This document shows positions 37,568-60,329 of a stretch of 64,000 bases of DNA, piece by piece. The notes under the pieces are model-generated. The model worked only from the letters and a program-made list of their open reading frames with translations, had not been told where the DNA came from and did no database searches. Each line of letters begins with the position of its first letter. Position 1 is the stretch's first letter. The DNA is taken from positions 1 to 64,000 of IMG/VR virus record IMGVR_UViG_3300010885_076238; one strand, given 5' to 3'. The position numbers and the translations under genes are program-made.

Positions 37568-37641
37568 GGGCCATTAACTCAGCTGGTTAGAGTGTCAAAC
37601 TCATAATTTGAAAGTCCTTGGTTCGAATCCAAGATGGCCCA
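37568..37641 (+). tRNA. tRNA-Ile2 (anticodon CAT, lysidine-modified type)
   Basis: Cloverleaf: acceptor GGGCCAT/ATGGCCC, anticodon stem TCAAA/TTTGA with loop CTCATAA, GGTTCGAATCC T-arm, A73, no encoded CCA. C4:G69 and C5:G68 present; no initiator features. Confidence 0.9.
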
Positions 37642-37713
37642 CTTCAGTCACTTTTGATTCCTCTACTTTTATCAAAATGAACTTCTCTGACTTCTAATTT
37701 TTTCACTTAGATA

Positions 37714-43507: not shown

Positions 43508-43705
43508 TTATTGTTCTGCTGCTACTGTTTTTTGTTGAATCTTTTCATCAAGTTCTGATCTTAGTATTACAACATCTTTTTCAGCTTCGACTCCTATTCT
43601 AACCTTGTTCATGTTGTCGATCCTTACAACAGTTAGACGGATGTCCTCTCTTCCAGGTATTCTTACAATAATTGTCTCGTCTTTCTTTCGGCTTAAAACT
43701 AGCAT
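43508..43705 (-). CDS. csrA: Carbon storage regulator CsrA (copy 2, divergent)
   Basis: MLVLSRKKDETI...KVRIGVEAEKDVVILRSEL; AAAGGAG SD. Confidence 0.9.
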   Translation of the reverse strand: MLVLSRKKDETIIVRIPGREDIRLTVVRIDNMNKVRIGVEAEKDVVILRSELDEKIQQKTVAAEQ

Positions 43706-43895: not shown

Positions 43896-43923
43896 TTGAC
43901 ATTCGAACCCTGTTACGTATAGT
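43896..43923 (+). promoter_or_regulatory. Sigma70-like promoter, 16-bp spacer
   Basis: TTGACA-N16-TATAGT. Confidence 0.7.
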
Positions 43924-44013: not shown

Positions 44014-44703
44014 ATGACTACTAAGCAGTTCGAAAGGACGATTGCTCGGATTAAGGATTTTCATTCTAAGGCTGAAAACCTCATCAATGAGATTTTCACT
44101 TCGCACAAGGTCGAAGAAAAGACGGTTGCTAAGAAAGAGGCAAAGGCCTCTAGAAAGGCCGATAAGACCACCAAGGTCAAGACGGGAGCAGAAAAGCCTC
44201 GTTCTGGTCGAGATGGCGGTCCTAATCGTTCGGAGCTTATCCGTGCTTATTTCAAGAAGTACGGCTCTAACGCTCGTCCTAGAGATGTTATTGAAGCTCT
44301 CAAGAAAGAGGGCATAGAGGTTGCCCCTGCTTTGGTTTCTATTGTGAAGAATAAGCTTAACGGCGGAGCAACGGTTACTCCTAAAGTGGATAAAACCGTT
44401 GTGAAGAAAGCTGAAAGAGTCGCCAAGAGCGGCGATCCCCTTCCGGCAGTTGTTCAGTCTGTTCTTGGGAAAAATAAGGATGGACTTAAGTTGGCGGATT
44501 TGACCAATAGGGTTGAAGAGGCTGGCTATAATTATAGCGGTAAGAAAGGTCGCGATGGATTGAAGCAGAATGTCTATCAGTGTCTTTACAGTCTCTCGAA
44601 AGAGAAACACCACCCTGGTTATGAAGGTACTGATCCGGTCGTTCTTCACGACGAAACTAGCAAAAGGTACATGCTGAATCCTAATGCTAAACGTACCGCT
44701 TGA
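44014..44703 (+). CDS. Lys-rich putative nucleoid-associated DNA-binding protein (planctomycete-type HTH plus C-terminal winged helix)
   Basis: NRSELIRAYF...PRDVIEALKKEGIEV.PALVS.VK; C-terminal VQSVL...GLKLADLT..VEEAGY. Confidence 0.7.
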   Translation: MTTKQFERTIARIKDFHSKAENLINEIFTSHKVEEKTVAKKEAKASRKADKTTKVKTGAEKPRSGRDGGPNRSELIRAYFKKYGSNARPRDVIEALKKEGIEVAPALVSIVKNKLNGGATVTPKVDKTVVKKAERVAKSGDPLPAVVQSVLGKNKDGLKLADLTNRVEEAGYNYSGKKGRDGLKQNVYQCLYSLSKEKHHPGYEGTDPVVLHDETSKRYMLNPNAKRTA

Positions 44704-44713
44704 TTTTTAGATC

Positions 44714-44752
44714 AAAAAATCCCACCCTCTGAAAAAGGGGGTGGGATTTTTT
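44714..44752. terminator. Bidirectional intrinsic terminator
   Basis: A6-TCCCACCCTCT/AGGGGGTGGGA-T6 between convergent genes. Confidence 0.85.
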
Positions 44753-44762
44753 ATTTAATTAA

Positions 44763-44945
44763 CTACCAAGGCATATCTTTTAATAATTCAATTATCCGGC
44801 GAGCTAAAGCTGCTCCACCAACAATGCGTCCATCACAATAATCCTCGCCATAACCAACTTTAGATTCATGCTTCTTTTGCTCTTCTATCTTCTCATTGCA
44901 TAATTTTATTATTTTAGAGATCTTCTCTTTTTGTTTAATATTCAT
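44763..44945 (-). CDS. Hypothetical protein
   Basis: GGAGG SD, 60 aa. Confidence 0.65.
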   Translation of the reverse strand: MNIKQKEKISKIIKLCNEKIEEQKKHESKVGYGEDYCDGRIVGGAALARRIIELLKDMPW

Positions 44946-45012
44946 AAAACCTCCAACAAATAAACCGCAAAAATAAATAATAATAACGAGTTAATTATAT
45001 TTTATTTTACAC

Positions 45013-45040
45013 TTTACTTTTCAATCGTTTATTCTATAAT
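45013..45040 (+). promoter_or_regulatory. Sigma70-like promoter, 16-bp spacer
   Basis: TTTACT-N16-TATAAT. Confidence 0.65.
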
Positions 45041-45106
45041 GTTGAGCGTTCGAAGAAGTTTGCAGAATTTTTGCAAATGGATTTCTCTAAAAGAAAGGGA
45101 TTGACT

Positions 45107-45622
45107 ATGACTAGGTTTGTTATGTTTTCGGCTATGTTTGTTTTTTCTATGGTTGTGAATGCTGCTGAGAATGGCGTTCCCACCTTAGCAAATGACACGC
45201 AGAGCGTTTTAAAGACTCCTGCTCAGGAAACCGTTCCTGCTCAGGAAACTACTACTACGTCTGCCGCTGCTGTGCAGGAGCAGATTTCCTCGACTCTTCT
45301 TGTTGTGGATTCCGCACCTGTCTGCAATGGCCCTAATTGTGTTAAGTATAAGCACAAGGGTAGAATTGCTCCTTGTGCTGTGCCGACCTCTGTTGGGGTC
45401 TGTATGACAGAAACGGGTTGTGATGCTTGTTGCCAGAAGGTAACTACCAGAACTCCTGTTTCTGTTGAAATTTGTGCTCCTCCTTGCCCCTCTAAGCAGG
45501 AAGTAAGGAAGAACAAGGACGGCAGTAGAGTTGTCTATGATTATGGCCGATATGAGGCTGTGGTCACTGGCAAGGATGGCGTTGTTGAAGTTAAGTATCG
45601 CAAGAGACTCTTCAATCGCTAA
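45107..45622 (+). CDS. Secreted Cys-rich protein of planctomycete type
   Basis: Signal peptide (VVNA/AE); CVKYK..IAPCAVP...EICAPPC...DGSRVVYDYGRY; PAQET tandem duplication. Confidence 0.75.
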   Translation: MTRFVMFSAMFVFSMVVNAAENGVPTLANDTQSVLKTPAQETVPAQETTTTSAAAVQEQISSTLLVVDSAPVCNGPNCVKYKHKGRIAPCAVPTSVGVCMTETGCDACCQKVTTRTPVSVEICAPPCPSKQEVRKNKDGSRVVYDYGRYEAVVTGKDGVVEVKYRKRLFNR

Positions 45623-45635
45623 TCTAATCTTAAAA

Positions 45636-46403
45636 TTAAAGCCCCGATGTCTTAACCGGCATCGGGGCTTTTTTATTTAATTTATAAAAATCCCAACCAG
45701 TATGATTTTCATTTCTATTAGATTCTAAAAAATGGTAGCCATTGCATTCTTTATATTTTGCATAAGCACAATCATAAATTAATATTTGATCTTCTGGTAT
45801 GACTATTGCCTCATTGTTCATTGTTAAAGCTGCGGTTATAATTCCTTGATCATCATTATGAGCAAGCTCTCTATCTTGTTTCCAATTTCCAATGCATAAA
45901 TTTTTTAATTTATCTTCAAAATCAAAGTTAGGTGGAATTCCAAATAATCCTCCATTTATTATGTATTTTTGATCTATAAAATGATCGTATTGTCCATAAT
46001 ATCTTTTTTGCACCTCTTTTCCATTAACTTTATGACGCTCGCCAGTAAATCCTGATAATATTATTGTTTTTTCTTTTTCTCGCAGAAACTCATCAATTTG
46101 TGGTATTTTATTTGTTATTATTAAGTCATTATCCAAGAAAATTTCATGTGTATTTGGGCTTAGTCTAGGAGGGCAAATTTTCCAAATTTCTTTTATTGGA
46201 GCGTACGGAAGACTATTTGTATATTTTTCTTGATCAATTAACTCTTCATTTATTTCTCTTAATATGTCTTTATTTTTTATTTGATTGTAACAAACAACAA
46301 TGTCGCAATCATAATTTTTTTTAAGTAAATTAATGGATTCTTTTAGTATTTCAAATCCTAAATTTGAAACAGGACCCAGAGTGTATCTAAATAATGGTTT
46401 CAT
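45636..46403 (-). CDS. GT-A glycosyltransferase-like protein
   Basis: IFLDNDLII, INGGLFG, DDQG. Confidence 0.6.
   Translation of the reverse strand: MKPLFRYTLGPVSNLGFEILKESINLLKKNYDCDIVVCYNQIKNKDILREINEELIDQEKYTNSLPYAPIKEIWKICPPRLSPNTHEIFLDNDLIITNKIPQIDEFLREKEKTIILSGFTGERHKVNGKEVQKRYYGQYDHFIDQKYIINGGLFGIPPNFDFEDKLKNLCIGNWKQDRELAHNDDQGIITAALTMNNEAIVIPEDQILIYDCAYAKYKECNGYHFLESNRNENHTGWDFYKLNKKAPMPVKTSGL
45638..45674 (+). terminator. Intrinsic terminator (possibly bidirectional)
   Basis: AAAGCCCCGATGTC/GGCATCGGGGCTTT plus T tract. Confidence 0.85.
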
Positions 46404-46430
46404 TACTAATTTAATTTAAAGGAGATTTTT

Positions 46431-47042
46431 ATGAGACTAGACCATCTTGCTTATAGAGTATCGGATAGGAGAAAAACCGCACAATTTTTTATTGATGCTT
46501 TTGGATATCAAATTCAAACTGAGTTTGATATAAACTTTGCTGAAGGAACATTATCAAAATGCATATCACTAGAACCGCCAGAAAAGCCAAAGGTGGAAAA
46601 TTTACATTGGCTCATCAGACAATATGTAGGTGATTTTTTGACTTCAAAATCTTCGAAAAAATCAAGTTCTTTTTCAAGTGATGAAATAGATGATACAAAA
46701 TTTGCAGAATTTCATCTTCCTCCAGAAATATTCATATCAGATGGAACTCCAGATTCTAGTGTTGGAAAATGGGTTGCAAGAAGAGATGGCGTTGGGGGTA
46801 TTCATCACATAGCATATCAAGTTGAAAGTGTTGAAAAAATAATGAAAGAATGGCAGGAAAAAGGATATGCCGAGTTTTCTTCAAGCAAACCGTTGACATG
46901 TCCTGGTTTAACACAAGTTTTTACAAAACCGAGTGCGTTGACAGGCGTTATTTATGAATTTATTGAACGTGGTGAGCATGGTTTCTGTACAGAAAATATA
47001 AAAGATTTAATGGAGAGTGCTAAAAATAATAATGAATTTTGA
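46431..47042 (+). CDS. VOC/glyoxalase-family protein
   Basis: LDHLAYRV, GIHHIAYQV, YEFIER. Confidence 0.85.
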   Translation: MRLDHLAYRVSDRRKTAQFFIDAFGYQIQTEFDINFAEGTLSKCISLEPPEKPKVENLHWLIRQYVGDFLTSKSSKKSSSFSSDEIDDTKFAEFHLPPEIFISDGTPDSSVGKWVARRDGVGGIHHIAYQVESVEKIMKEWQEKGYAEFSSSKPLTCPGLTQVFTKPSALTGVIYEFIERGEHGFCTENIKDLMESAKNNNEF

Positions 47043-47781
47043 AAAAATCAAAGAAGAATTATTATTGTCTGATAGTTCTGATGGAATAAACAAAGACATA
47101 TTAATTGTTGTTCATAATCAATATGATTATGTTAAAAATTGCATAGAATCAATTTACAAAAACACTAAAAACTTTAATTTATTTATTTGGGACAACGCCT
47201 CAGATAAAAATACAAAATTTTATTTACAAAAACTTAGTAATAAAAATAAAAATGTTAAGCTATACAGATCTGAAGAGAATATAGGATTTGTTATTCCTAA
47301 TAATAAAATGGCAAAGGAGACTACGTCGCCATACATTTTATTGCTGAACTCAGACACAGAAGTTCGACCATATTGGGATGGTGTTTTGATTGGATTTTTA
47401 GAAAATAATAAAGATGTGGCAGCCACTGGTTTTGAAGGTGGAATTGTTGATTCGATGGGAATGGGTGTTTCAAGAAATTATGGTTACGAAATAGATTATA
47501 TTTGTGGTTTTTGTTTATGTATTCCGCGTAAAATTTATGAAGATTTTGGCTTATTTGATGAAGAAAACATTAAATTTGCTTATTGTGAAGATTCTGATTT
47601 TTCATTTAGACTAAAAGAAAAAAATAAAAAAATATATGCTTGCTATTCTTCTGATCTTGTTTTTCACTATGGAAGCGTAACATCTAACTCTGTTGCACAA
47701 AAAATAAACTTAAAATATAATATTCAAAATAATTTAATTTATTTACAAAAAAGATGGGGCAAATATTTAATTAAAAATTAA
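47017..47781 (+). CDS. GT2 glycosyltransferase
   Basis: IVVHNQ, WDNAS, ENIGF, LLNSDTE, YCEDSD. Confidence 0.88.
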   Translation: MLKIIMNFEKIKEELLLSDSSDGINKDILIVVHNQYDYVKNCIESIYKNTKNFNLFIWDNASDKNTKFYLQKLSNKNKNVKLYRSEENIGFVIPNNKMAKETTSPYILLLNSDTEVRPYWDGVLIGFLENNKDVAATGFEGGIVDSMGMGVSRNYGYEIDYICGFCLCIPRKIYEDFGLFDEENIKFAYCEDSDFSFRLKEKNKKIYACYSSDLVFHYGSVTSNSVAQKINLKYNIQNNLIYLQKRWGKYLIKN

Positions 47782-47797
47782 ACGTTTCTTCTCATGG

Positions 47798-47826
47798 TTT
47801 ACTGGGTCGTCTCTTTGGGCTACAAT
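47798..47826 (+). promoter_or_regulatory. Sigma70-like promoter (17-bp spacer)
   Basis: TTTACT-N17-TACAAT upstream of clpX. Confidence 0.5.
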
Positions 47827-47867
47827 GTGCGTGTATATAAAATCATTGTTCCTAAGGAGTTGTATTT

Positions 47868-49130
47868 ATGAGCAGGAAGAAAGTTGAAGAAAAAAAGTGT
47901 GATTTTTGTGGCAAGGCCTCCAAAGAGATTGGCCCTCTGGTAGAAGGTGGGCCGGAAGGCACTGATCGCGTTTATATTTGCAGCGATTGCATTGATACCG
48001 CCGATAAGGTTATGTCTAAGAGAATTGCATCATCGCCTAGCAAGCCTAAAAAATTAAGCATTCCATCTCCAAGAGAAATTGTTTCGAAATTAGACGAATA
48101 TATTTGTGGTCAAACTGAAGCTAAAAAGAATTTGGCAGTTAGTGTTTATAATCATTACATTCGTCTTATGGATAAAGAACTGAGTAAGACCATAACGGAC
48201 AAGACCTTAGCAGAGACTCAGATTGACAAAAGCAATGTTTTGATGGTTGGTCCGACTGGATCGGGCAAAACTTTGTTGGCTTCTACTTTGGCTAAAATTT
48301 TGGAAGTTCCTTTTGCCATTGGAGATGCTACTACGGTTACGGAAGCTGGGTATGTTGGCGAGGATGTTGAGAATCTTCTTCTAAGACTCATTCGTTCTGC
48401 TGATATGGACATAGGCAGAGCAGAGATGGGAATTCTTTATATTGATGAAATTGACAAAATTGGTCGTTCTTCTGGAAATGTCTCTATAACAAGAGACGTT
48501 TCGGGAGAAGGAGTCCAGCAAGCTTTGCTAAAGATGCTTGAGGGAACCGTGTGCAATGTTCCTCCCGTCGGAGGTAGAAAGCACCCAGAGCAAGAGTTCT
48601 TGCAGGTAAATACTCAAAATATTTTGTTTATTTGCGGAGGAACTTTTGTTGGGATTGATGATATTATTAAGAAGCGTTTAGGCAAAAAGCAAATAGGTTT
48701 TGGAAGTCCCTTCGGTGATGCCTCTAAATTTCGAGGCGATTCTTGGATGGATTTCCTTCAATCCGAAGACCTAGTTGAATTCGGGATGATTCCTGAGTTT
48801 ATTGGAAGGCTTCCTGTCCAAACTTGTCTTAGAGAGCTTACTGAAGATGAATTGGTTCATGTTTTGACTGAACCAAAAAATGCTCTCCTTAAGCAGTACA
48901 AGAAACAATTTCTTTATAGCAATGTAAATTTAGAATTTACCAAAGAAGCCATAAAGGAAATTGCAAAAATGGCAATCAAAGAGAAAACAGGAGCTAGAGC
49001 TTTGAGAAGAATTGTTACTAAAATTATGAATCCCATTACTTTTGACTTGTCTGAGTTTGAAAGTAAAGATCTCATAATTGATGAGAAGATTATTAGAGGA
49101 GAAAGAGATATTTTCAAAAAAGCGGCTTAG
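47868..49130 (+). CDS. clpX: ATP-dependent Clp protease ATP-binding subunit ClpX
   Basis: Zn finger CDFCGK...[46 protein letters not shown] loop, TGARALR. Confidence 0.97.
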
Positions 49131-49391
49131 TTGAAACCAAACCACAAGAACGCAAATAAACCTAATTATTACGGGATGAAAATGGATTTTTGTTCAATAT
49201 GCTCGCTATTTTCTAGAACTTCAGAAAAAGCTCATAGAAATCCCGAATATGTTTGCAAGTGCAACTTTGAATTAAATTCAAGTAAGTCTATTTGCGATTC
49301 TTGTGGTTTGTTTTTTAAATCTTCGTCCCATTTTTATCTTTGCAAATGCAAGGATAAACCCACCAAGAAAAAAGCAGTAAGTAAAAGTTGA
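49131..49391 (+). CDS. Small Cys-rich protein with duplicated CxxC...CxC motif
   Basis: CSIC...CKC and CDSC...CKC; start uncertain. Confidence 0.45.
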   Translation: MKPNHKNANKPNYYGMKMDFCSICSLFSRTSEKAHRNPEYVCKCNFELNSSKSICDSCGLFFKSSSHFYLCKCKDKPTKKKAVSKS

Positions 49392-49415
49392 CTTTTATAT
49401 AAAATTGATTATACT
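49388..49415 (+). promoter_or_regulatory. Sigma70-like promoter, 16-bp spacer
   Basis: TTGACT-N16-TATACT. Confidence 0.65.
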
Positions 49416-49434
49416 AAGCCAAAGGAGGGCTTTT

Positions 49435-49722
49435 ATGAAAACTTCATCCGTTTCTGATAAACTACCCACAATATCCATTGAGGCTTTGGCCGCGATTAAA
49501 AAGGGGGTTGAAGAAAAACACTCTATTTCTAATTTGGAAAATTTAGGAGTCAAGCAAAGATTAATTAATCTACTTGAATCTCATAAAATTTCAAATTTAG
49601 AACAATTGATGTTTCATAAAAAAGAAACTTTATTATCAATCCCAAATTTTGGAAAGAGACAATTATTTGTTTTGTTTGAAGCTCTTTCTAAATATAATGA
49701 ATTAGAAAACGAGTACAAATGA
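49435..49722 (+). CDS. Stand-alone RNA polymerase alpha-subunit C-terminal-domain-like protein
   Basis: LENLGVKQRLINLLESHKISNLEQL...LLSIPNFGKRQL matches alpha-CTD ELSVRS.NCL...L....NFG.KSL; AAGGAGG SD. Confidence 0.8.
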   Translation: MKTSSVSDKLPTISIEALAAIKKGVEEKHSISNLENLGVKQRLINLLESHKISNLEQLMFHKKETLLSIPNFGKRQLFVLFEALSKYNELENEYK

Positions 49723-50780
49723 TGTTGTCGTTTTCTAATTTGGTTGCAATAGCCGCTTCTTTTTTGGCAGCTTGGGCTGTTGTTAAATATCTAATATTAA
49801 TAGAAATAAGGATTGACGAAAATTCTTACAAGGTTTTATATGATATATGTAAAAATAACAAAATCGTATTAATTGAAGAAGAATTTACTCATGAAAGAAA
49901 ATATCCAATAGTTTTTTCTGCCTTATGTTTTATAAAAGAATGTCCCGGTTTTTATATCAATCATCAAGAAAGATTAATGAGTGCTGGCTTTGAAGCAAAA
50001 GATTTCATTACCAAAGTAACCCTGTTCAGATTTAGTTATTATGATTTTAAAGAATACCTAATAAAATCTCATAAGAATTGCGTAAATGTTCCGATTGATT
50101 TGTTGTTTCCTTATGGATCTGACAAGATCGGAAGCATAAAGAGCAAAGAATTGAATCCAATCATACTCAATGAAATATGTTTGGATTTTGAAAAAGAAAT
50201 AGGAGATAAAGTAAAAACAAGTGCTTTATTCTATGGCAACCCAGGTAATGGGAAAACTTATTTTATTAAATATTTGGCCACAAAATACAATTTGCCAATA
50301 AAGATGATTACTTTTTCTCCTGATTTTACCAATCATGATTTATTGATGCTTTTTTCTCAGATCCCATCTGATTGCATTGTTTTGTTGGAAGATTTTGATA
50401 ATTACTTCGACAAAAGAAAATGCATTATTGGCGACGACAATAAAAATATTAAATTTACATTCGACATTATCTTGAATGCTTTTGACGGTGTTTACAACAC
50501 CTATGAAAATGTCATTTTTATAATGACCGTTAATGATATTTCTAAAGTAGATGATGCTCTGAAGAACAGACCCGGTCGATTCAAATATGTTTTGGAATTT
50601 CCAAATCCAAGTGTAGAAATTATTGAAAAATTAGTTGATAATAAAGATTTTGCAAAAAGAATGGTTGGAATGAATCTAGATCAGGTTCTTACTGTTAAAA
50701 AATATCTTACAGCAGGAGTTGACTTTGAAGATTCATTAAAACGAATCAATTATCAAAAGGAAGTAGCTCCCATCGGCTAA
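49719..50780 (+). CDS. BCS1-like AAA ATPase with N-terminal TM helix
   Basis: FYGNPGNGKT, LLEDFD, FIMTVN, ALKNRPGRF. Confidence 0.8.
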   Translation: MMLSFSNLVAIAASFLAAWAVVKYLILIEIRIDENSYKVLYDICKNNKIVLIEEEFTHERKYPIVFSALCFIKECPGFYINHQERLMSAGFEAKDFITKVTLFRFSYYDFKEYLIKSHKNCVNVPIDLLFPYGSDKIGSIKSKELNPIILNEICLDFEKEIGDKVKTSALFYGNPGNGKTYFIKYLATKYNLPIKMITFSPDFTNHDLLMLFSQIPSDCIVLLEDFDNYFDKRKCIIGDDNKNIKFTFDIILNAFDGVYNTYENVIFIMTVNDISKVDDALKNRPGRFKYVLEFPNPSVEIIEKLVDNKDFAKRMVGMNLDQVLTVKKYLTAGVDFEDSLKRINYQKEVAPIG

Positions 50781-51561
50781 TCTTTTTATGTTTTCTATTA
50801 TTGAATAAAGTTTTTTCAATATAAAAAACTTTTGAAGTGTTATAAAGTCCTGCCAATATAGAAAATGAGCTTGGGGCTGTTACTAGAACATCAGATTTCG
50901 TTAAGTTATAAAAGCTTTCAAAAACATTTTCATTTGCATGAATTTTTATATTTTGGTTTTTAAAATAATCGAATTCGTTTAGATTTTTTTTAATTTCTGT
51001 GAATATATGAATTTGATAATTTTCATATATTTTTTTTAATTTTTCTATAAGTTTTTTATAAAAATCTATTGGAACGTATCTTTTAGGATAAGATTTTATT
51101 GTTACATCTCCTCTCCTAATATGAATTGATATATTGCGGGATTTTTCATCGAACCGCAGTTGTTTTTTTGAAATTAGAGGACGCAACACGGGCATAATTT
51201 CATCATAGATTTCCATGTAATTTTTATTATCATCCCATCCTTCTATAATTCCAAATGGCAAAAAAATTCTAACTAGTGTGTTTTGTTTTTGTTCTTTGAT
51301 TTTTTCAAGTTGACTTTCTGTCGGATACAATATGTCTATTATTTGGTCATATTTTATTTGATCTACATTTTTGTAAATTTTATTTATATTAAAAAAATCT
51401 TCAGATTCTTTTGCGTCTACGCAATGCTCTATGCTTGTGATTGGAGAGTGGACATATTCACAATTTAATATTTTTGATAAAGCTATTATTCCTATTATTC
51501 TTTGATATTGTGCTCCTAGCCCATCTTTTTTTTCTTCTGTTTTATATGTCAAGTAAAGCAT
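50746..51561 (-). CDS. Fucosyltransferase-like protein (GT11-type)
   Basis: DGLGAQ, SIHIRRGD, DVLVTAPSSFS. Confidence 0.75.
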   Translation of the reverse strand: MLYLTYKTEEKKDGLGAQYQRIIGIIALSKILNCEYVHSPITSIEHCVDAKESEDFFNINKIYKNVDQIKYDQIIDILYPTESQLEKIKEQKQNTLVRIFLPFGIIEGWDDNKNYMEIYDEIMPVLRPLISKKQLRFDEKSRNISIHIRRGDVTIKSYPKRYVPIDFYKKLIEKLKKIYENYQIHIFTEIKKNLNEFDYFKNQNIKIHANENVFESFYNLTKSDVLVTAPSSFSILAGLYNTSKVFYIEKTLFNNRKHKKISRWELLPFDN

Positions 51562-51563
51562 GT

Positions 51564-52535
51564 CTATATGTTATTTAGCCAATACTCTATCATTTCATCC
51601 ATCATGGATTTGAAAGTATATGACGGTTCCCACCCTAGTTTTTCTTTAGCTTTAGAAGCATCACCTTTCAGATAATTTAGTTCTTCAGGTCTAATGTATT
51701 TCTCATCGCAAGCAATGTATTTTTTAGAGTCTAATTCTAAATTATTAAAGACATAATCAACCAAATCTCTTACGCTTCTAGATGACCCCGTCGCCAGAAC
51801 AAAATCCTCGGGTTCTTTTTGTTGCAGCATTGACCACATTCCAACAACATAATCTTTCGCATGTCCCCAATCTCTTCTTGCATCTAAATTTCCTAAAGAA
51901 AGCTTATTGGACAATCCTTTTTTAATTTTTACTGCTTCTAAGGCAACTTTATTTGTAACAAAATTTATTCCTCTCCTTGGACTTTCGTGGTTAAAAAGAA
52001 TTCCTGAACAAATGAAAAGATTATATGAGTTTTTGTAATTATTGCATAAGGAGTGTGCAAATAATTTTGAACAACCATAAGGACTCACAGGTATCATTTG
52101 AGTTGTTTCTCTTTGATATCCATCCGCATCACAGCAATTTCCAAACATTTCTGAAGTTGCTGCATGGTAAACTTTTGATTTTGGAGAGAATTTTTTTACA
52201 GCTTCAAGCACGGCCAAAGTTCCTCCAGCATTAACATCAAGAGTATATTTGGGCAATTCAAAAGATATTTGAACATGGGACTGAGCTGCTAAGTGGTAAA
52301 TTTCATCTGGTTTTAATTTGCTAATTACCGTTTCAATACTTAGCGGATCTGTTAAATCTGTATAATGAAGACTTATTAGGTTTTCTGCATGTATATTTTT
52401 AATTCTTGTTGTTTGTGACTCGGGAACAGAATTTCTTCTTATTGTGCCGTGTATTTCATATTTTTTTTCTAGTAAAAATTCTATTAAATAAGAAGCGTCT
52501 TGTCCATTTGCCCCTAAAATTAGTGCTTTTTTCAT
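51564..52535 (-). CDS. gmd: GDP-mannose 4,6-dehydratase
   Basis: GANGQDASYL, HLAAQSHV, AATSEMFG, SPYGCSK, FNHESPRRG..FVT, LGNLDARRDWGHA. Confidence 0.96.
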   Translation of the reverse strand: MKKALILGANGQDASYLIEFLLEKKYEIHGTIRRNSVPESQTTRIKNIHAENLISLHYTDLTDPLSIETVISKLKPDEIYHLAAQSHVQISFELPKYTLDVNAGGTLAVLEAVKKFSPKSKVYHAATSEMFGNCCDADGYQRETTQMIPVSPYGCSKLFAHSLCNNYKNSYNLFICSGILFNHESPRRGINFVTNKVALEAVKIKKGLSNKLSLGNLDARRDWGHAKDYVVGMWSMLQQKEPEDFVLATGSSRSVRDLVDYVFNNLELDSKKYIACDEKYIRPEELNYLKGDASKAKEKLGWEPSYTFKSMMDEMIEYWLNNI

Positions 52536-52543
52536 AAAATATA

Positions 52544-53452
52544 TTAGTAAATTTTTTCTTTATTGTCTACTGGTAATCTTTGTTTTTTATGAAGTATAGC
52601 ATAATTATATAAATTAATAATTTTATTTTCATCAAAATTTTCATCAAAACTAAGACTGAAATTAAATATGAATTTATTTGCTACGTAGTTTCTATTGATA
52701 AATTTCCAAAAAAAGTGGTCTTTTTTATTTTTTATATTTTCATTTATAAAACATCTAAAAGCCCAATCGTATGCTAAATTAGGAGTTTGTTTAACTGATT
52801 CTAAAAAATCTTGTTCAAAATGCTGCATAAATATTTGGAAGTTTTTTTTACCTGTTGCGTATAAAGCAACTCCATTTATATGCGTTAACATAGTAGGATC
52901 TGTTGAGAATTGCTCCCCATCGTACAAAGCCCCAGAAATCCAAAATTCATTTGAATTTTCAACATAATTTTTTATTTTTTCTAGCCAATCATTAGATAAA
53001 ATACAATCTGTTTCTAGTAGCAAAGTGGTATCATATTCTTTTGATAATTCCATAGATTTAAAAAACATTAAATTTGGTCCTGATTTTATTCCGTAAGCAG
53101 GAATATTATCTTTATTTTCTTCAATGTATCGCTTCTCTATCTTAAAAGGAATATACAAATCTTCATGCTCAGTAAGATTTAAATTATAAATTTTAACTTC
53201 TTTGAACATTTCTTTTAAATCAACATCTTCTTCAGGCATAAAGTTATTTGCTATTATTATAAAACATAAATCTTTTGATAAGTTTTTATTTGTTTTATTT
53301 TTTAATTGATTCAAGAAAATTTCATATTGATTTTTTTCTTTTGAAATAAAATTTATACAAACACACTCTAGCTTGTTTGGCTCACTTTTTATTTCATTTA
53401 AATTTAAACTATCTATTAGACTTTTGTAAATTACATTTTTAATCTCGCTCAT
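52544..53452 (-). CDS. Hypothetical protein, possibly glycosyltransferase-like
   Basis: LLETDCIL, WISGA, HINGVALY; in the gmd operon. Confidence 0.55.
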   Translation of the reverse strand: MSEIKNVIYKSLIDSLNLNEIKSEPNKLECVCINFISKEKNQYEIFLNQLKNKTNKNLSKDLCFIIIANNFMPEEDVDLKEMFKEVKIYNLNLTEHEDLYIPFKIEKRYIEENKDNIPAYGIKSGPNLMFFKSMELSKEYDTTLLLETDCILSNDWLEKIKNYVENSNEFWISGALYDGEQFSTDPTMLTHINGVALYATGKKNFQIFMQHFEQDFLESVKQTPNLAYDWAFRCFINENIKNKKDHFFWKFINRNYVANKFIFNFSLSFDENFDENKIINLYNYAILHKKQRLPVDNKEKIY

Positions 53453-53459
53453 TTTTTCC

Positions 53460-54344
53460 TTAAGATAAATGATTTAACTCAATTTCTATATCAAATATTT
53501 TACTAATCCAAAAAGAAAACCCAGAACCCCAAAAATGAGAGCTATAAGAAATTATGTTTTTCGATTGTGATAATATTTTCAAATCTAAAGCTAAATCAAA
53601 CATGTTTTTTATAGAAATACTCTTTTCTTGAAGACAAAGAAAACCGGGTTTATTTACACAGTGGTTGCTTTTTGTTTTGGCAACTACAATTCTTTTATTT
53701 TTTTTATTTATTAGAAACTTTTTGAATTTATTGGAGTCCGATAGCACCACTATTTTCTCTTTTGTTTTCATAAGAATTCTATTATAAATAATTTCATATT
53801 TGAATTTAGTTTGAATTTTAATTTTTTCAATTATTTCGATTGGCTCTTTTTCTAGTAACTCTATGTCTCCAAGTCTAAAATGAAACACTTTATATTTTTT
53901 TTCTTTTAGTCTATTTTCTTTTAAGAATTTTTCGTATTCCAATTCTATTTTCTCATTAAAAGAAAAGCAATTTCTAAAAAATTGCTTTTCTTTTTTTTCT
54001 AATTTAAAATTTTCAATTTTTTCGTAAAGATTTTTATTGAAATTTGTTGGAAAAACATCAAAATAAAAAGAGCTAATAAAATGATTTTTATCTTTTTCTG
54101 AAATAATTTTTTGTATAATTTCTTCTACTTGAATAATTTTTTTTGACGCATCTAGATTGATTATTTCGCATTCTTTGTAGTCTAAATTTGATTCATTCTT
54201 ATTAATTAAATAATTAGATATTGGGTGATGCTTAAAATCAATAAATAAGTTTTCTGGGCATTTTCTATAAAGAAAAACACCTCCTCGAATGAAGTCGCCA
54301 ATTCCCCCGGAAAAATTTTTATTATATGATTGAATTATTGCCAT
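53460..54344 (-). CDS. Fucosyltransferase-like protein
   Basis: GGIGDFIRG, FHFRLGD, VLSDS, LDLKIL, GSGFS. Confidence 0.7.
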   Translation of the reverse strand: MAIIQSYNKNFSGGIGDFIRGGVFLYRKCPENLFIDFKHHPISNYLINKNESNLDYKECEIINLDASKKIIQVEEIIQKIISEKDKNHFISSFYFDVFPTNFNKNLYEKIENFKLEKKEKQFFRNCFSFNEKIELEYEKFLKENRLKEKKYKVFHFRLGDIELLEKEPIEIIEKIKIQTKFKYEIIYNRILMKTKEKIVVLSDSNKFKKFLINKKNKRIVVAKTKSNHCVNKPGFLCLQEKSISIKNMFDLALDLKILSQSKNIISYSSHFWGSGFSFWISKIFDIEIELNHLS

Positions 54345-54475
54345 TTGTATATTTTAATTTAGCTTCTGCACAAATTATTTATCAAATATCATTGAATTTA
54401 AATTTAATAATATTTTTACAAATTTGTCGCTTAAATTTTTTTTTTATTATTAATAAATCCATCATGAAATCGCTA

Positions 54476-54503
54476 TTGACAGAAAAAAAATATTTAGTAT
54501 AAT
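54476..54503 (+). promoter_or_regulatory. Sigma70 consensus promoter, 16-bp spacer
   Basis: TTGACA-N16-TATAAT. Confidence 0.75.
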
Positions 54504-54531
54504 AATTTTGTCACTAAAATTTGGAGGGTTT

Positions 54532-54771
54532 ATGTTCTTGTACTATGTTAGAACGGGATCGGTTGATACAAGACAATTAGCTTCAAGTCACAAGCAAGCG
54601 GCCATAAAAACTTTAAAAAGCTGCAGTGATTTTGGAAAATTTGTGATAGTTGGAACCAATGATATTGATGACGCAACCACCAGTGGTTCGCAGATGTTCT
54701 TTTCAACCTCTGCTCTATTAGAGGATTGCGAATCAGATTTGCTTGATAACAACATGAAATTAGTTTATTAA
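54532..54771 (+). CDS. Hypothetical protein
   Basis: GGAGG SD before ATG 54532. Confidence 0.7.
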   Translation: MFLYYVRTGSVDTRQLASSHKQAAIKTLKSCSDFGKFVIVGTNDIDDATTSGSQMFFSTSALLEDCESDLLDNNMKLVY

Positions 54772-54810
54772 AAAAATAATTTTTATTATTTTATCTATAA
54801 TTTTTCTTGC

Positions 54811-54838
54811 TTTACAATCTTGAATTGCGACCTATGAT
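54811..54838 (+). promoter_or_regulatory. Sigma70-like promoter, 16-bp spacer
   Basis: TTTACA-N16-TATGAT. Confidence 0.6.
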
Positions 54839-54989
54839 ATAGAGTCATGTGAATGATTTACTCAGTCGTTGAGTAAGTTATTTCAAATCAAATTAAATTT
54901 TTTAGGTCAAAAAATCGTCTAAAATATTAATTACTAAGACTCGTTATCCAAGTGTGTCCAACATAATTCCGAAAACAAGGAGAGAAGTT

Positions 54990-56024
54990 ATGGCTAAGAA
55001 GATTGATATTGTGAAGAAGTCTGAAACCAAGCCCGAAGCAGCATCTAAGTCTGATGCCGCTCATTCCATTCCTATGGGTGGGGATCGTGAAGCTCCTCGC
55101 AAGCATAGTAAGGTTGTGGATCGCTTTAGGACGAAGGTGAAGCCTTCTACTAAGGAGGTCAAGGCTGACGCTCGTCCAGTCATCGATATTGATGACGAGA
55201 CGAAGGAAAAGTTTGTAGAATTCGCTGCTACCAAGGAACTTTTTGACATTTTTGAGGCCAGCAAAAAGAGTCAGACGGCAGATATTTATGGGGCCATTTT
55301 TGAAAAGTATAAGGATACTTTGTGGCGTTCCAAGACTCAGCCTAAGAATCCTTCTATCAAGGTTCAAAATTTGGATGGAAGTCTTGAAGCCGAAGGTCAG
55401 TTTATTGTTCAAGTTGGAACTAGAATTAAGATTAATATGCCAGAGGTTCCAGAAGATGAGTTGCCGGAAGATGTCCTTCTTAAGGCGCTTGTCGATCTTG
55501 GCGTAAAGAAGAGCAATGCGGCTCGTATTATTGAAGATGAGGTTTCATTCGTTCCTCAGTGGAGTCTTAACTTCACAGATATGCTCAATGGCGTGATGGT
55601 TGAAGGAAAGTTGCAGCCTGCAACAGACCCTCAGATTTCTGCTTCCGAGCTTCTTTTTCAGGTTATAAATGGTCAGGATGAAGATGGAATTGAATTAAAT
55701 TCTAAGTCTCGTCTTGATATGTTGAAAAAGATTTCGGAAGAAGGTTGGGTATTGATCAAGCAGAATGTGGAAAGTCATACCAAATACTTTCCGCAGCTTG
55801 TTGACGGTGCGGATTTTCTTGATAGAGTTTGCAATTACGCAGAATCTAAGGATGAATTGGATTCTATTCTGACAGTTTTCTGCCCTGTGCATTTCTGTCA
55901 GAGAGTCAAGTTTGCTTGTAGTGACGCTCCTGCCGATAAGACCGCAAGGCTTTTGTCGGAAGCAGAAGCTACTATTACCGGCAAGCCGAATGATGATGAA
56001 GTTGAAAGAGCTTATAAAAAGTGA
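54990..56024 (+). CDS. Hypothetical protein with Lys-rich N-terminus and host-like codon usage
   Basis: AAGGAG SD before ATG 54990; AAG/GCT/CGT-rich codons. Confidence 0.8.
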   Translation: MAKKIDIVKKSETKPEAASKSDAAHSIPMGGDREAPRKHSKVVDRFRTKVKPSTKEVKADARPVIDIDDETKEKFVEFAATKELFDIFEASKKSQTADIYGAIFEKYKDTLWRSKTQPKNPSIKVQNLDGSLEAEGQFIVQVGTRIKINMPEVPEDELPEDVLLKALVDLGVKKSNAARIIEDEVSFVPQWSLNFTDMLNGVMVEGKLQPATDPQISASELLFQVINGQDEDGIELNSKSRLDMLKKISEEGWVLIKQNVESHTKYFPQLVDGADFLDRVCNYAESKDELDSILTVFCPVHFCQRVKFACSDAPADKTARLLSEAEATITGKPNDDEVERAYKK

Positions 56025-56040
56025 AAATTAGGAGTGCGTG

Positions 56041-56358
56041 ATGAGAAAAAAGTCTAGAACCGATATTATCAGAGAACACTTGCTTTCTGCAAAATCATTT
56101 GAACAAAGCCCAAATGCTGTTGTTCAGGATTTGAAGAAAAAGGGAGTTGATGTTACTGTTCATCATGTTGGAATGGTGAAACTCTCTATTAGAGGCAAAA
56201 GAGTTTTGAAGAGAATCGGTAATAGAAGTGGTCGTAGCGGTAGAACTAAGAAAAATTCTGGATTATTTATTGCCAAAGATCTTTTGAAATCTTGTAATAA
56301 TAATCTCGATTTGGCTTTGCAAAATTTGAAAGTTGTTGCCAAGCTAATGAATGATTAG
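56041..56358 (+). CDS. Planctomycete-type small DNA-binding protein (paralog)
   Basis: SRTDIIREHL...PNAVVQDLKKKGVDVT; C-terminal LFIAKDLLK...LALQNL. Confidence 0.7.
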   Translation: MRKKSRTDIIREHLLSAKSFEQSPNAVVQDLKKKGVDVTVHHVGMVKLSIRGKRVLKRIGNRSGRSGRTKKNSGLFIAKDLLKSCNNNLDLALQNLKVVAKLMND

Positions 56359-56410
56359 GCGTTGTGTGTCGCAATGCTATTGTTTCTAAAATGCCAAAGG
56401 AGAAAATTTT

Positions 56411-56770
56411 ATGGCTGAAAAGGAAGTGGTTAATCGGTCTCAGGCGATTCGTGAATATTTGAATTCGGTGAAGCCGTCTGATCGTGGCCCTAGGGCTGTT
56501 AGCGAAGCTTTGAAGGCTAAGGGTCTTAGCGTTAGCCCACAGCTTGTCTCCCAGGTTAAAACTTCTTTGAATAAGAAAACTTCTTCAAAGAAGAAGGGTC
56601 GAGTTTATGATTCTTCTTTTTCAAAGAAGATTAAGAAGTCTCGTCCAGATTGGTTTCAATTGGAAAGTGTTGACACTTTGATTAGTGCCAAGAATCTTCT
56701 TAAGTCTGTTGGTGGAGATTTGAATGCTGCAAAAAAGAATTTAGAAATCATTTCTAAGCTCTTGTCGTAA
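56411..56770 (+). CDS. Planctomycete-type small DNA-binding protein (paralog)
   Basis: VNRSQAIREYL...GPRAVSEALKAKGLSVSPQLVSQVK; LISAKNLLKSVGG. Confidence 0.75.
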   Translation: MAEKEVVNRSQAIREYLNSVKPSDRGPRAVSEALKAKGLSVSPQLVSQVKTSLNKKTSSKKKGRVYDSSFSKKIKKSRPDWFQLESVDTLISAKNLLKSVGGDLNAAKKNLEIISKLLS

Positions 56771-56775
56771 GCAGG

Positions 56776-56830
56776 AAAAGAGAGTAGAATTCCCGTCTGA
56801 GATACGGCGGGAGTTCTATTTCTCTTTTTA
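56776..56830 (+). terminator. Long intrinsic terminator hairpin
   Basis: AAAAGAGAGTAGAATTCCCGTC/GGCGGGAGTTCTATTTTCTCTTTT. Confidence 0.85.
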
Positions 56831-58184: not shown

Positions 58185-59198
58185 ATGATGATTCCATATG
58201 TTCCAATAAACGAAAATCGTCGAGAAGAACTTCAAATTGATCTTTCGAATTGTAATAAAACCTTAAAAAAGTATTACAAACAAGTTGCTCATCGAAAAGG
58301 AAGCAGGGGATTTGTAACTAGCAACAACGAAAGTATTAATAGACCCAAATATTACAAACAAATATTGGGTGCGTATAGAAGTTGTCCCACGGCAGATATT
58401 AATTTGCACGGAGTCTTAATTCCAAATTGTGATGTTAGGGCAATAGTTTTTCTTGAAGATATTAGATGGGAAATTCTAACATCTATTTCGGGAATGCTCA
58501 CTGGGCTTGCCAATAAGAAAAACAAAAGCAAGAGTCTTTGTGATTCTGCGTTATCTTTTGAGGATTTGGAAAGTGAAGCTTTCAAGTCTGCCCTTTCCTC
58601 TATTCACTCTTACGCAAAAGAAAAGATTTGTTTTTCTACATATTTTTATGTTTGTGCAAACAGACACATCAGCAGCTTGTGCAGTAGATCTAATTCTATG
58701 TCTAAACTTAGCAAAAAATCAATTAAACTAAAAAGAAGATACATAGAAGTTCAAAAGTCTTTAGGAAGAAACTCTAATTTTGAAGAAGTTGTTGAACTTA
58801 TGAATTTGAAAGAAAATGAAATTGAACTTCTCCGATCTACATTGAATTGTTTCGTTTCTCATCACGATGAAAAAACTACAATGAGTAAGCATTACGCTGG
58901 AGTTGATGGGGCGAAACATTATTCTTCCTCTGGGAAAAGGGGTGGGGATTTGATTTTATCTTCAAATAATACTTTTGTAGAATCGTTAGATGATAAAGAG
59001 ATTGGAGGCATGAATCTCACCGATTTGGAAAAAGCTGTCTTAGAAGGATTTATGCAATCTTCTAGCAAACTAGGAATAAACTCCGTTGCTAAGAATGTTG
59101 TCAATCCTAAGACTGGCAAGCCTTTTTCAAGGATGGCTGTGACTTATGCTTGGAGAAGGGTAAAAGAGAAAATCAATAACTTCAGGAAAGTTGCCTAA
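58185..59198 (+). CDS. Divergent sigma70-family RNA polymerase sigma factor
   Basis: Region 2 (FEDLESEAF...Y..EKICFSTY...NRHI), region 3 (QKSLGRNSNFEEVVELMNL), region 4 (LTDLEKAVL...INSVAK...SRMAVTYAWRRVKEKI); AAGGAG SD. Confidence 0.75.
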   Translation: MMIPYVPINENRREELQIDLSNCNKTLKKYYKQVAHRKGSRGFVTSNNESINRPKYYKQILGAYRSCPTADINLHGVLIPNCDVRAIVFLEDIRWEILTSISGMLTGLANKKNKSKSLCDSALSFEDLESEAFKSALSSIHSYAKEKICFSTYFYVCANRHISSLCSRSNSMSKLSKKSIKLKRRYIEVQKSLGRNSNFEEVVELMNLKENEIELLRSTLNCFVSHHDEKTTMSKHYAGVDGAKHYSSSGKRGGDLILSSNNTFVESLDDKEIGGMNLTDLEKAVLEGFMQSSSKLGINSVAKNVVNPKTGKPFSRMAVTYAWRRVKEKINNFRKVA

Positions 59199-59204
59199 TA
59201 CATC

Positions 59205-60329
59205 ATGCAGAAACATCTTAATTTTTTGGTTCCGAGTTTAGACGCTAGAAGAAATTTTATTCAATCTGGCCAGTGTAATTTGAATTCTTTCATTGGAAAT
59301 GAGGAGGCAATAAGGCGCCTTTCTAGAGCGGTTTTTTCTGCCATTGGAAAAGAAGACCACTGCTGTTCGGACTATTCTTTTGCTTTGTGCGGGCCACCAT
59401 CTACCGGCAAGACTTATCTTGCAAAACTATTTGCCAAGACATTGTCTATACCTTTTGTTGTTATCGAACCGCAGACAGTGAAAAAAGTTGATGATATTTT
59501 CTTTGAAACCCAAAAGGCAATTACCGAGCATTATCAAAAGCTTGGACTAAACTTTGAATTATTTGACTTTGGCGACAAAGTTTATTGTCCTCCTCCTTGT
59601 GTTGTTTTTATCGATGAGGTTCACAATCTAAAATCAAATGTTGTTCAAGGTTTATTGAAGGCGACAGAGCCAAACGATAGACTTATGATTACTGAAGAAG
59701 GAAGTACGATTCATACAAATAATATCTGTTGGGTGATAGCAACCACAGATAGAGGCGATTTGTTCGATGCTTTTGATACAAGATTTCAAAAAGTATTTCT
59801 AAGACTGTATTCCAAGAAAGAAATTTCTAAAATTATCAACTCCAACAACCCAGATTGGAGCGAGGAGATTTGCGATATTGTTTCAAACTATAATTCACAA
59901 GTTCCAAGAGAAGCTATTGCTTTTGCAAAAGACATGAGGGTTGAACAAGAAATGAATCCAAGAGATTGGAAATTCGTTGCTCAATCTGTTGCAAGGGATC
60001 ACGGAATTGATGAATTTGGAATGAGCCAAATAAGAGTTGATATTCTTAAAGCATTGGGTCAATCTCCAATGTCTGCATCGCAACTTCCATTTGTTGCACA
60101 TGTAAAAGAAGATGAACTTAGAAAGTATATTATGCCCCCACTTCTCTCTAGAACCCCAGATCAAGCGATTCCCATGGTTACAGTCTCGACCAAAGGGTAT
60201 ACAATAACCATTGCTGGAATTGACGAGCTAAATAAGAGAGGGATTAGAAACAGGGGTTTAGAGGCTATTCCAGAAAGCGTTAGACATTCTTTCGTAAAAG
60301 AAGAAGAAAAGGAGATTTCTTATGCCTGA
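59205..60329 (+). CDS. RuvB-like AAA+ ATPase
   Basis: FIGNE, CGPPSTGKT, FIDEVHNL, IATT.RG...TRF, VPR sensor 2, GIDEFG, C-terminal winged helix. Confidence 0.85.
   Translation: MQKHLNFLVPSLDARRNFIQSGQCNLNSFIGNEEAIRRLSRAVFSAIGKEDHCCSDYSFALCGPPSTGKTYLAKLFAKTLSIPFVVIEPQTVKKVDDIFFETQKAITEHYQKLGLNFELFDFGDKVYCPPPCVVFIDEVHNLKSNVVQGLLKATEPNDRLMITEEGSTIHTNNICWVIATTDRGDLFDAFDTRFQKVFLRLYSKKEISKIINSNNPDWSEEICDIVSNYNSQVPREAIAFAKDMRVEQEMNPRDWKFVAQSVARDHGIDEFGMSQIRVDILKALGQSPMSASQLPFVAHVKEDELRKYIMPPLLSRTPDQAIPMVTVSTKGYTITIAGIDELNKRGIRNRGLEAIPESVRHSFVKEEEKEISYA

Follow-up and report, generated by a model that had tools for sequence, protein, structure and literature searches.

An unclassified helix-turn-helix protein family found in Planctomycetota is present in four copies in an uncultured jumbo phage

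General features of the locus

The DNA analysed here (64,000 nucleotides; hereafter the window) is the first 64 kb of the IMG/VR virus record IMGVR_UViG_3300010885_076238, which is 204,311 bp long, is classed as linear and has a CheckV completeness of 88%. Three genes of the window, P0001, P0002 and P0003, encode basic proteins with a common helix-turn-helix (HTH) domain of ~50 residues, and a fourth gene, P0014, is located further along the record. Sequence comparisons show that the family to which these proteins belong occurs both in part of Planctomycetota and in AT-rich jumbo phages of an uncultured clade. The GC content of the window is ~30%, and its genes include those for tail-fibre and baseplate-like proteins (PHROG matches), a UvdE-type endonuclease, an RNA ligase, clamp-loader-like AAA+ proteins, ClpX and two CsrA proteins, together with open reading frames (ORFs) resembling the C-terminal domain of the RNA polymerase alpha subunit (alpha-CTD) and sigma-70 region 2. 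The 204-kb size of the virus record and the presence of tail and baseplate, replication and transcription genes identify the source as a jumbo phage, and the phage origin assumed in an earlier reading of this DNA (the original prediction) is thus borne out by the record and by the tail and baseplate matches. The four genes and the domains of the three that lie in the window are as follows.

44014-44703, plus strand: P0001, 229 amino acids (aa), isoelectric point (pI) 9.9
44224-44361, plus strand: HTH of P0001 (aa 71-116), the part common to the other copies
44437-44679, plus strand: winged helix of P0001 (aa 142-222), HARE-HTH-like, with a fold like that of the linker-histone globular domain
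56041-56358, plus strand: P0002, 105 aa from the ATG at 56041 (open frame from 56038), pI 10.9
56053-56199, plus strand: HTH of P0002, followed by a basic linker
56251-56352, plus strand: C-terminal hairpin of P0002
56411-56770, plus strand: P0003, 119 aa, pI 10.2
56432-56575, plus strand: HTH of P0003, followed by a Lys-rich linker
56660-56764, plus strand: C-terminal two-helix hairpin of P0003
~123,950-124,423 of the record, outside the window: P0014, the fourth copy, 157 aa, with an acidic tail

The three ORFs of the window lie where the original prediction had placed them, and the domain that it had proposed as common to them was significant in every pairwise BLASTP comparison: P0001 and P0003 share 51% identity over 47 aa (E = 3e-10), P0002 and P0003 align over their whole length (E = 6e-13), and P0001 and P0002 match with an E-value of 2e-4. 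The motif that had been written for the domain is real, but P0002 deviates from it (S-R-T for N-R-S, H for Y and NNN for GG). For P0002, the ATG at 56041, which had also been proposed earlier, is the better start because it is preceded by AGGAG 6 nt upstream and identical database entries have a length of 105 aa.

A profile built solely from GC-rich homologs of the non-phage type (the non-phage-type profile) matched exactly four genes in the whole 204-kb record, namely P0003 (E = 3.9e-20), P0014 (8e-16), P0001 (3.9e-14, HTH only) and P0002 (6.3e-9). P0014 contains an HTH as in the other copies and a hairpin that can still be recognised, after which come ~25 Asp/Glu residues in a row; because of this tail, its overall pI is as low as 4.3. 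The feature is therefore somewhat richer than had been described, comprising four copies, a composite long protein and, in related phages, a fused variant. P0014 is flanked by two related-looking ORFs of 248 and 237 aa (~122,595-123,341 and 124,895-125,608 of the record), which share '...GRLP...' motifs and have no Pfam match.

Structure of the shared domain and of the short proteins

In the AlphaFold2 model of P0003, which was based on a 13-sequence alignment, the N-terminal domain consists of three helices (residues 9-19, 27-36 and 43-55; predicted local distance difference test [pLDDT] score ~87) without strands, and is followed by a low-confidence Lys-rich linker and by two further helices (84-99 and 104-118; pLDDT ~80). 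The C-terminal helix pair, which had been proposed earlier for both short proteins, is thus predicted in P0003, and it is also aligned by hhalign to the non-phage-type family: the comparison of the phage-type short proteins with the two-HTH non-phage-type family covered both the HTH and the hairpin (99.2%, E = 3.7e-19, 107 columns). A homodimer predicted for the hairpin of P0003 scored 0.37 against a mark of 0.42 and was counted neither for nor against dimerisation.

The structural neighbours of the N-terminal domain of P0003 are mostly DNA-binding HTHs (GT-1, Zur/Fur, ArgR, sigma-54 RpoN, Tc3, LUX and PadR), with modest scores (Z of 5-6.4; Foldseek E-values of at least 2). In a PDB profile search, the best match was the HTH of EspR, which aligned from helix 2 to helix 3 with an E-value of just 0.066 over 36 residues, followed by the ArgR N-domain (E = 0.29). 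The three window proteins yielded nothing significant in Pfam, PHROG or NCBIfam, and the members of the phage-type alignment were likewise unmatched. These sub-threshold similarities, together with the commonness of small three-helix bundles, would fit a domain that binds RNA or serves as a protein adaptor and merely resembles an HTH. Such a role is nevertheless highly improbable, as most structural neighbours and all recurrent Pfam near-matches are DNA-binding HTHs, several non-phage-type homologs reach E-values of ~1e-7 against ArgR and Tc3 HTH models, and the proteins are strongly basic. We consider it very probable that the proteins of this family bind DNA.

The linker of P0003 contains an insertion, YD..F....I..(I/L)RPDWF, at 56606-56665 (aa 66-84), which is also present in the homolog P0004 and is absent from the other close homologs. 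It matches three tandem motif repeats in a 207-aa ORF located at ~72,510-73,133 of the record (E ~1e-4). The insertion has no Pfam match and, judging from these occurrences, looks like a small mobile peptide module.

The wider protein family and its distribution

A tblastn search of 50,697 GenBank phage records with P0003 and P0001 gave no match, and a word-indexed search with P0003 found only ten close relatives, all metagenomic and unnamed. By an exhaustive profile search, 1,527 cluster representatives were collected at E <= 1e-3, 204 of them at E <= 1e-10. Domains were parsed in 172 proteins (the 150 best profile matches, the window paralogs and the first matches). Where N denotes the HTH and C the hairpin, the layouts were NN (99), NC (40), N (20), NNN (8) and NNC (5); the proteins thus include those with one HTH and a hairpin, those with two HTHs and those with three, and most of them end in the same hairpin, L..AK.L....GG....A...L..L.

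When 40 non-phage-type members were searched against Pfam, Arg_repressor was matched by 13 (best E = 5.8e-7), HTH_Tnp_Tc3_2 (PF01498) also by 13 (best E = 1.8e-7) and HTH_32 by 8, and a few family homologs have been named 'arginine repressor' by JGI. Conserved polar sites of the domain are found in helix 1, with K/R (85%) and S/T (92%) at its N-cap and an Arg within it (86%), and around helix 3, which is preceded by S/T (83%) and contains K/R close to its end (98%). Full-text literature searches found no description of this family or of a planctomycete nucleoid protein of its type. The label 'nucleoid-protein-like', which the original prediction had given to the domain, therefore corresponds to no Pfam, NCBIfam or PHROG family and to no published description that was found. 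The family is a new, unclassified and unannotated branch of HTH domains of a familiar kind, that of small basic HTH DNA-binding proteins.

All taxon labels obtained for family homologs are of Planctomycetota. The NCBI-named homologs are solely from Pirellulales, Planctomycetia and metagenome-assembled genomes of Planctomycetota. The nearest ESM Atlas clusters of P0003, of the non-phage-type homolog P0130 and of the P0001 model are mostly labelled Planctomycetota, and those neighbour clusters that lack a Pfam family are all labelled 'commonest Planctomycetota'. The homolog-bearing contigs have GC contents of 54-65%, compared with ~30% in the phage, and carry genes for sulfatases, WD40 Ser/Thr kinases, DUF1559 (SBP_bac_10) and DUF1501 proteins, RF-1, L31 and aconitase near the homologs. 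These varied housekeeping neighbours indicate that the homologs are ordinary stand-alone chromosomal genes.

Sampling of the phylum started from two homolog contigs that belong to species genomes; the resulting prevalences are lower bounds, because a capped number of candidates was scored in each genome. Among evenly drawn genomes of the phylum, 5 of 201 were positive with the non-phage-type profile (E <= 1e-5) and 5 of 401 with the phage-type profile. In the order of one positive complete genome, G158 (hereafter the G158 order, which was taken to be Planctomycetota), 29 of 101 genomes were positive. Most positive genomes have one match, the exceptions being G158 with nine and G004 with six. 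Escherichia coli K-12, the sole genome sampled outside the phylum, had no match (a trivial control), and scans of genome contigs with P0130 and then with a 4-sequence alignment gave pattern matches and no confirmed relative. The family is thus found in Planctomycetota and is concentrated in part of the phylum. The earlier statement that the domain is typical of Planctomycetota holds insofar as every label is of this phylum, but the distribution is patchy and the domain is not typical of the phylum as a whole; enrichment relative to other phyla is only suggested. It is reasonable to suppose from this family link that the phage clade has a planctomycete host or gene donor.

Mimicry of host proteins is one of the roles that the original prediction had put forward, together with phage chromatin and counter-silencing; all three are tentative, and a set of ordinary phage transcription regulators would agree with the data nearly as well. 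As mimics, the phage proteins might form mixed oligomers with host family members through the shared hairpin and exert a dominant-negative or counter-silencing effect, thereby protecting AT-rich phage DNA. The conservation of the C-terminal hairpin between phage and non-phage-type members in the hhalign comparison, the presence of one to nine copies in positive bacterial genomes, the far higher AT content of the phage DNA than of the non-phage-type homolog loci and the possibility that the acidic-tail copy serves as a decoy would all accord with this. However, the HTH remains fully conserved in the phage copies, although a pure decoy could do without it, and we regard mimicry as improbable.

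The long protein P0001

The model of P0001, which was built with 23 homologs, begins with a long N-terminal helix (residues 4-30) and a disordered Lys-rich segment (34-59), and a second disordered Lys-rich linker (119-134) connects the HTH (72-115 in the model) to the winged helix (143-221 in the model). The winged helix was modelled at a pLDDT of ~90 with the topology H-(E)-H-H-E-E. The Lys-rich linker and winged helix that the original prediction had ascribed to the long protein are thus both present in the model. In the hhalign comparison of the P0001 family with the non-phage-type family, only the HTH was aligned (98.1%, E = 7.5e-14, 59 columns).

All 50 rows listed by VIA-align for P0001 fall on its C-terminal domain (~118-229 of the model), and nearly all of them are titled winged-helix DNA-binding proteins or regulators. 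TtgV (Z 9.2) and the linker histone H1.8 (7kbf_K; Z 8.8) are among them, and the winged helix superposes on the globular domain of histone H5 (1hst) with a Z of 8.9 and a root-mean-square deviation (rmsd) of 1.8 A over 69 of 74 residues. Foldseek retrieved NFRKB and H1, and the DNA-binding domain of Rok as a weak row only. The winged helices of IclR, Fur and MarR score as well as those of H1/H5, and P0001 has no match to Pfam Linker_histone at E <= 1, so that the likeness to H1/H5 is one of fold only. The best shape match of the model in the ESM Atlas is a Planctomycetota cluster in which 48% of the members carry Pfam HARE-HTH (PF05066). The HARE-HTH model itself gave sub-threshold matches in 2 of the 23 members of the P0001 family (E = 0.032; cut-off 25.9 bits) and with a winged-helix homolog from the G158 order (16.6 bits, E = 0.011), and none with residues 135-229 of P0001 alone. 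The C-terminal domain is thus a plausible, sub-threshold candidate for membership in HARE-HTH.

P0001 is the best conserved member of the set, and its 37 full-length homologs, which are 44-80% identical to it, are found on contigs as long as 270 kb. In the G158 order, the P0001-family profile matches two kinds of genes: genes for an HTH plus hairpin match positions ~50-130, and separate ORFs (open frames of ~140-215 aa), present in 32 of the 101 genomes, match positions ~105-215. One of the latter, of 134 aa, is composed of a coiled-coil-like N-terminal helix, an Arg-rich linker and a winged helix sharing 40% identity with its P0001 counterpart (E = 2e-13). Given these separate helix and winged-helix ORFs, P0001 looks like such a protein into which the family HTH has been inserted, and hence like a composite of two planctomycete-type parts.

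Transcription units and codon usage

The signals around the three genes and the ORF that precedes P0002 are as follows.

43896-43923, plus strand: sigma-70-like promoter candidate TTGACA-16-TATAGT, ~90 nt upstream of P0001 (11/12 consensus; pattern match only)
44714-44752, plus strand: strong intrinsic terminator after P0001 (17-bp stem and T-run, -30 kcal/mol, z -6.46)
54811-54838, plus strand: promoter candidate TTTACA-16-TATGAT upstream of the three-gene unit (pattern match only)
54954-56024, plus strand: 356-aa ORF, the first gene of the P0002/P0003 unit
56358-56378, plus strand: weak hairpin between P0002 and P0003 (-10.3 kcal/mol, z -2.13, poor T-run)
56782-56821, plus strand: strong intrinsic terminator that ends the three-gene unit (16-bp stem, -31.4 kcal/mol, z -6.39)

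The weak hairpin that separates P0002 from P0003 would probably terminate transcription only inefficiently, and two transcription units are therefore likely, one consisting of P0001 alone and the other of the 356-aa ORF, P0002 and P0003. The original prediction had counted three units, two of them ending in strong terminators; both terminators are indeed strong, but the units are probably two, each of which ends in this way.

The GC content at third codon positions (GC3) is 0.45 in P0001, 0.40 in the 356-aa ORF and 0.38 in P0003, about twice the background of ~0.20, which fits selection for high expression. The 356-aa ORF has a basic and disordered N-terminus, and its orthologs precede the HTH gene or genes in the related contigs L025 and L024 (84 and 69% identity, respectively). 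It has no match in Pfam, PHROG or PDB, nor in the 101 genomes of the G158 order, and its sole match among GenBank phages is a distant one in the 595-kb uncultured phage LR756511.1 (24% identity, E = 9e-11); by these searches, it appears to be phage-specific. Very basic, probably highly expressed proteins that are co-transcribed with a highly conserved phage-specific protein might also be DNA-condensing proteins that are packaged in the virion, in the manner of internal head or core proteins. However, the genes are located among replication and transcription genes rather than in a structural module, and the non-phage homologs are stand-alone genes of chromosomes, which leaves packaging with a very low probability.

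One of the CsrA genes (43508-43705, minus strand) lies back-to-back with the promoter region of P0001, and the P0001 leader contains several GGA motifs close to the ribosome-binding site. A structured 5' leader of P0001 was considered and rejected (z -0.69). Ahead of the three-gene unit, a perfect sigma-70 consensus, TTGACA-16-TATAAT, is found at 54476-54503, immediately upstream of an 87-aa ORF (54508-54771).

Relationships among the copies within the phage clade

Two related metagenomic contigs with GC contents of ~34-35% have retained the gene order of this region, namely a 350-aa ORF, the HTH gene or genes, a small ORF and a 231-aa ORF on the opposite strand, followed by an ORF of ~320-335 aa at the position of the sigma-like gene of the window and then by an AAA+ gene. 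One of these contigs contains a single short HTH gene, and the other contains one fused gene (P0164), which encodes a P0002-like HTH, a P0003-like HTH and one hairpin. A scan of viral contigs with the phage-type short alignment found nothing; a scan with another alignment found one related IMG/VR contig of 48.6 kb, which has a local GC content of ~47-56% and contains a P0001-like gene and one short gene.

A tree of the N-terminal domains (355 rows, 51 columns) was too poorly resolved to order duplications or transfers. In this tree, P0002 and P0003 fall into one group of Lys-rich short proteins (Shimodaira-Hasegawa-like approximate likelihood ratio test support 90), in which P0002 is placed beside domain 1 of the fused P0164 (98); P0001 and its orthologs form a clade of their own (97), and P0014 is found elsewhere among non-phage-type domains. 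From their grouping, P0002 and P0003 seem to have arisen by duplication in the phage lineage. P0001 and P0014 look like old or independent lineages, and the term paralogs is to be read loosely for the four copies.

Comparison with known DNA-binding proteins

EspR, a nucleoid-associated regulator of Mycobacterium tuberculosis (PDB 3qwg, 3qf3 and 4ndw), is similar to the short proteins in architecture: within ~130 aa, it combines an HTH at the N-terminus with a helical module for dimerisation at the C-terminus. It differs in lacking a Lys-rich disordered linker and tandem HTH variants, and no relationship was detected between the C-terminal parts; whole-chain Foldseek alignments to 3r1f and 3qf3 have an rmsd of ~15 A. 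The N-domain of ArgR/AhrC (PF01316) is similar in helix order and length and in structural matches (1aoy, 3ere and 2p5k). P0002 scores 13.1 bits (E = 0.085) and P0014 15.7 bits (E = 0.013) with PF01316, against a cut-off of 27, and P0001 and P0003 are unmatched. Unlike ArgR, the family has no predicted beta-wing after helix 3 and no arginine-binding hexamerisation domain (no PF02863 match). In view of these two absences and of scores well under the cut-off, the family is not ArgR.

HTHs of the Tc3/Hin type (PF01498 and HTH_7) are similar in that PF01498 is among the Pfam models reached by the non-phage-type homologs, but the family contains no transposase or recombinase catalytic domain. The HTH of Hin is preceded by a G-R-P-type arm, whereas such an arm is found in just 17% of the family domains. 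HARE-HTH and H1/H5 resemble P0001 in its winged helix, which, like that of H1, lies between Lys-rich disordered segments. H-NS, MvaT, Lsr2 and Rok differ in having the reverse domain order, as the DNA-binding part comes first and the hairpin last in the present family; the window proteins have no Pfam or NCBIfam match to any of these four. No described family that was tested was matched at family thresholds, and the phage proteins are therefore filed under none.

In a survey of 224 jumbo phages (Iyer et al. 2021, PMC7824862), DsbA of T4 is given as a homolog of GapR, and HMG-like helicase loaders are reported; proteins like the present ones are absent from it, and HARE-HTH, Planctomycetes and histones have zero occurrences in its text. 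The DsbA/GapR case in large phages represents the same concept, that is, relatives of bacterial chromatin proteins encoded near transcription genes, but the fold and family are different.

Possible functions of the phage proteins

Two readings deserve most of the weight. The first, to which we give an even chance, is that the phage proteins are abundant architectural or global DNA binders rather than repressors of single operators. The HTH would contact DNA, with the conserved polar residues making backbone contacts, while the basic Lys/Arg-rich linkers would add non-specific electrostatic affinity and the hairpin (in P0001, the N-terminal helix) would render the protein multivalent. The proteins could thereby coat, bridge or remodel phage DNA, host DNA or both during infection, and P0001 would combine two DNA-binding domains with H1-like basic linkers. 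Several sequence features would be in keeping with this, including the pI values of 9.9-10.9, the disordered Lys/Arg-rich linkers, the tandem HTHs of relatives and the lack of a ligand-binding domain, as would the number of stand-alone copies per genome (up to nine), the raised GC3, the consensus-like promoter candidates and the strong terminators. The winged helix of P0001, which resembles the globular domain of H5/H1 and lies between basic linkers, and the acidic tail of P0014 also fit.

The second reading is that these are ordinary sequence-specific transcription regulators of the phage, in which the HTH reads an operator, the hairpin dimerises and the four copies have diverged in site recognition. 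This is possible, though less probable than an architectural role; the variable base-reading positions and the placement among transcription genes agree with it almost equally well. Repressors classically consist of an HTH and a small helical module at the C-terminus, and variation in the domain is greatest at the canonical base-reading sites of helix 3, which are unlike among the four copies. The neighbouring genes are sigma-like, alpha-CTD-like and AAA+ clamp-loader-like, with synteny in both related contigs examined. Long Lys/Arg-rich linkers, tandem HTHs, an acidic tail, raised GC3 and a fusion to an H1-like domain would, on the other hand, be unusual for simple repressors.

Several observations weigh against the architectural reading. 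In an alignment of 333 domains, variability peaks at the positions of helix 3 that usually read bases (information of 0.65, 1.57 and 0.90 bits), which also differ among the four phage copies, as is expected of diversified sequence-specific regulators. P0001, P0002 and P0003 are encoded in a replication/transcription module near the sigma-like, alpha-CTD-like and AAA+ genes, and every structural and Pfam similarity of the HTHs of the window proteins is below family thresholds. An AT-hook or Hin-like GRP arm was rejected as a feature of the family, since a G-R-type arm was found in 51 of 307 domains and GRP in only 6; a G-R-P-type arm does precede the HTH of the fourth phage copy, and an A-G-R-x-G-G arm is conserved in the P0001 family. 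The four phage copies do not form one clade in the poorly resolved N-domain tree, which requires at least three separate placements, and they may thus not be recent paralogs. The raised GC3 could also be a trace of transfer from GC-rich donors. Host mimicry, virion packaging and a role other than DNA binding are, even when taken together, unlikely.

The architectural reading can be extended to the view that the family is a major unrecognised chromatin protein family of part of Planctomycetota, from which a clade of AT-rich jumbo phages that infect them captured and diversified a four-piece toolkit for organising phage DNA or dismantling the host nucleoid. The pieces would be two short bridging proteins, a fusion of the HTH with an H1-like winged helix and an acidic-tail variant. 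This extended view is tentative, and we consider it rather improbable. Planctomycetota are noted for condensed nucleoids, and no dedicated chromatin protein family of theirs turned up in the literature searched. The nucleoid of Gemmata, for instance, is described as highly condensed (PMC3440768). The present family spans over 1,500 sequence clusters, reaches nine copies in a single genome, lacks a Pfam entry and has a clear DNA-binding fold. It is a reasonable candidate for such a role, and a chromatin-like role together with a planctomycete host is a reasonable suggestion from the sequences. The four diverged forms in an uncultured 204-kb phage offer a rare clue that the host or gene donor of a jumbo-phage clade may be a planctomycete and, if the toolkit view is correct, genes of the family would also be a host marker for this uncultured phage clade and an instance of host DNA-organising proteins being borrowed by phages. 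Should the proteins be ordinary regulators, the results still provide annotation for four 'hypothetical' genes and a large orphan family.

Other features of the window

A set of genes reminiscent of host takeover surrounds P0001-P0003 and comprises genes for ClpX (47868-49130), a 105-aa alpha-CTD-like protein (49405-49722), an AAA+ ATPase (49719-50780), a sigma-70 region-2-like protein (58185-59198) and a clamp-loader-like AAA+ protein (59205-60329). The 105-aa ORF is translationally coupled to the AAA+ ATPase gene. The two CsrA homologs (35104-35256, plus strand, and 43508-43705) score 77 and 54 bits, respectively, both above the Pfam cut-off. The sole tRNA of the window is a tRNA-Met (CAT) at 37568-37642 on the plus strand. 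One further gene lies directly beyond P0001.

45071-45622, plus strand: 183-aa ORF with a signal-peptide-like N-terminus and many Cys residues

This ORF has no match in Pfam or PHROG. It has a promoter-like site of its own at 45013-45040 and a strong terminator at 45638-45671, and its GC3 of 0.41 is as unusual for the phage as that of the adjacent P0001.

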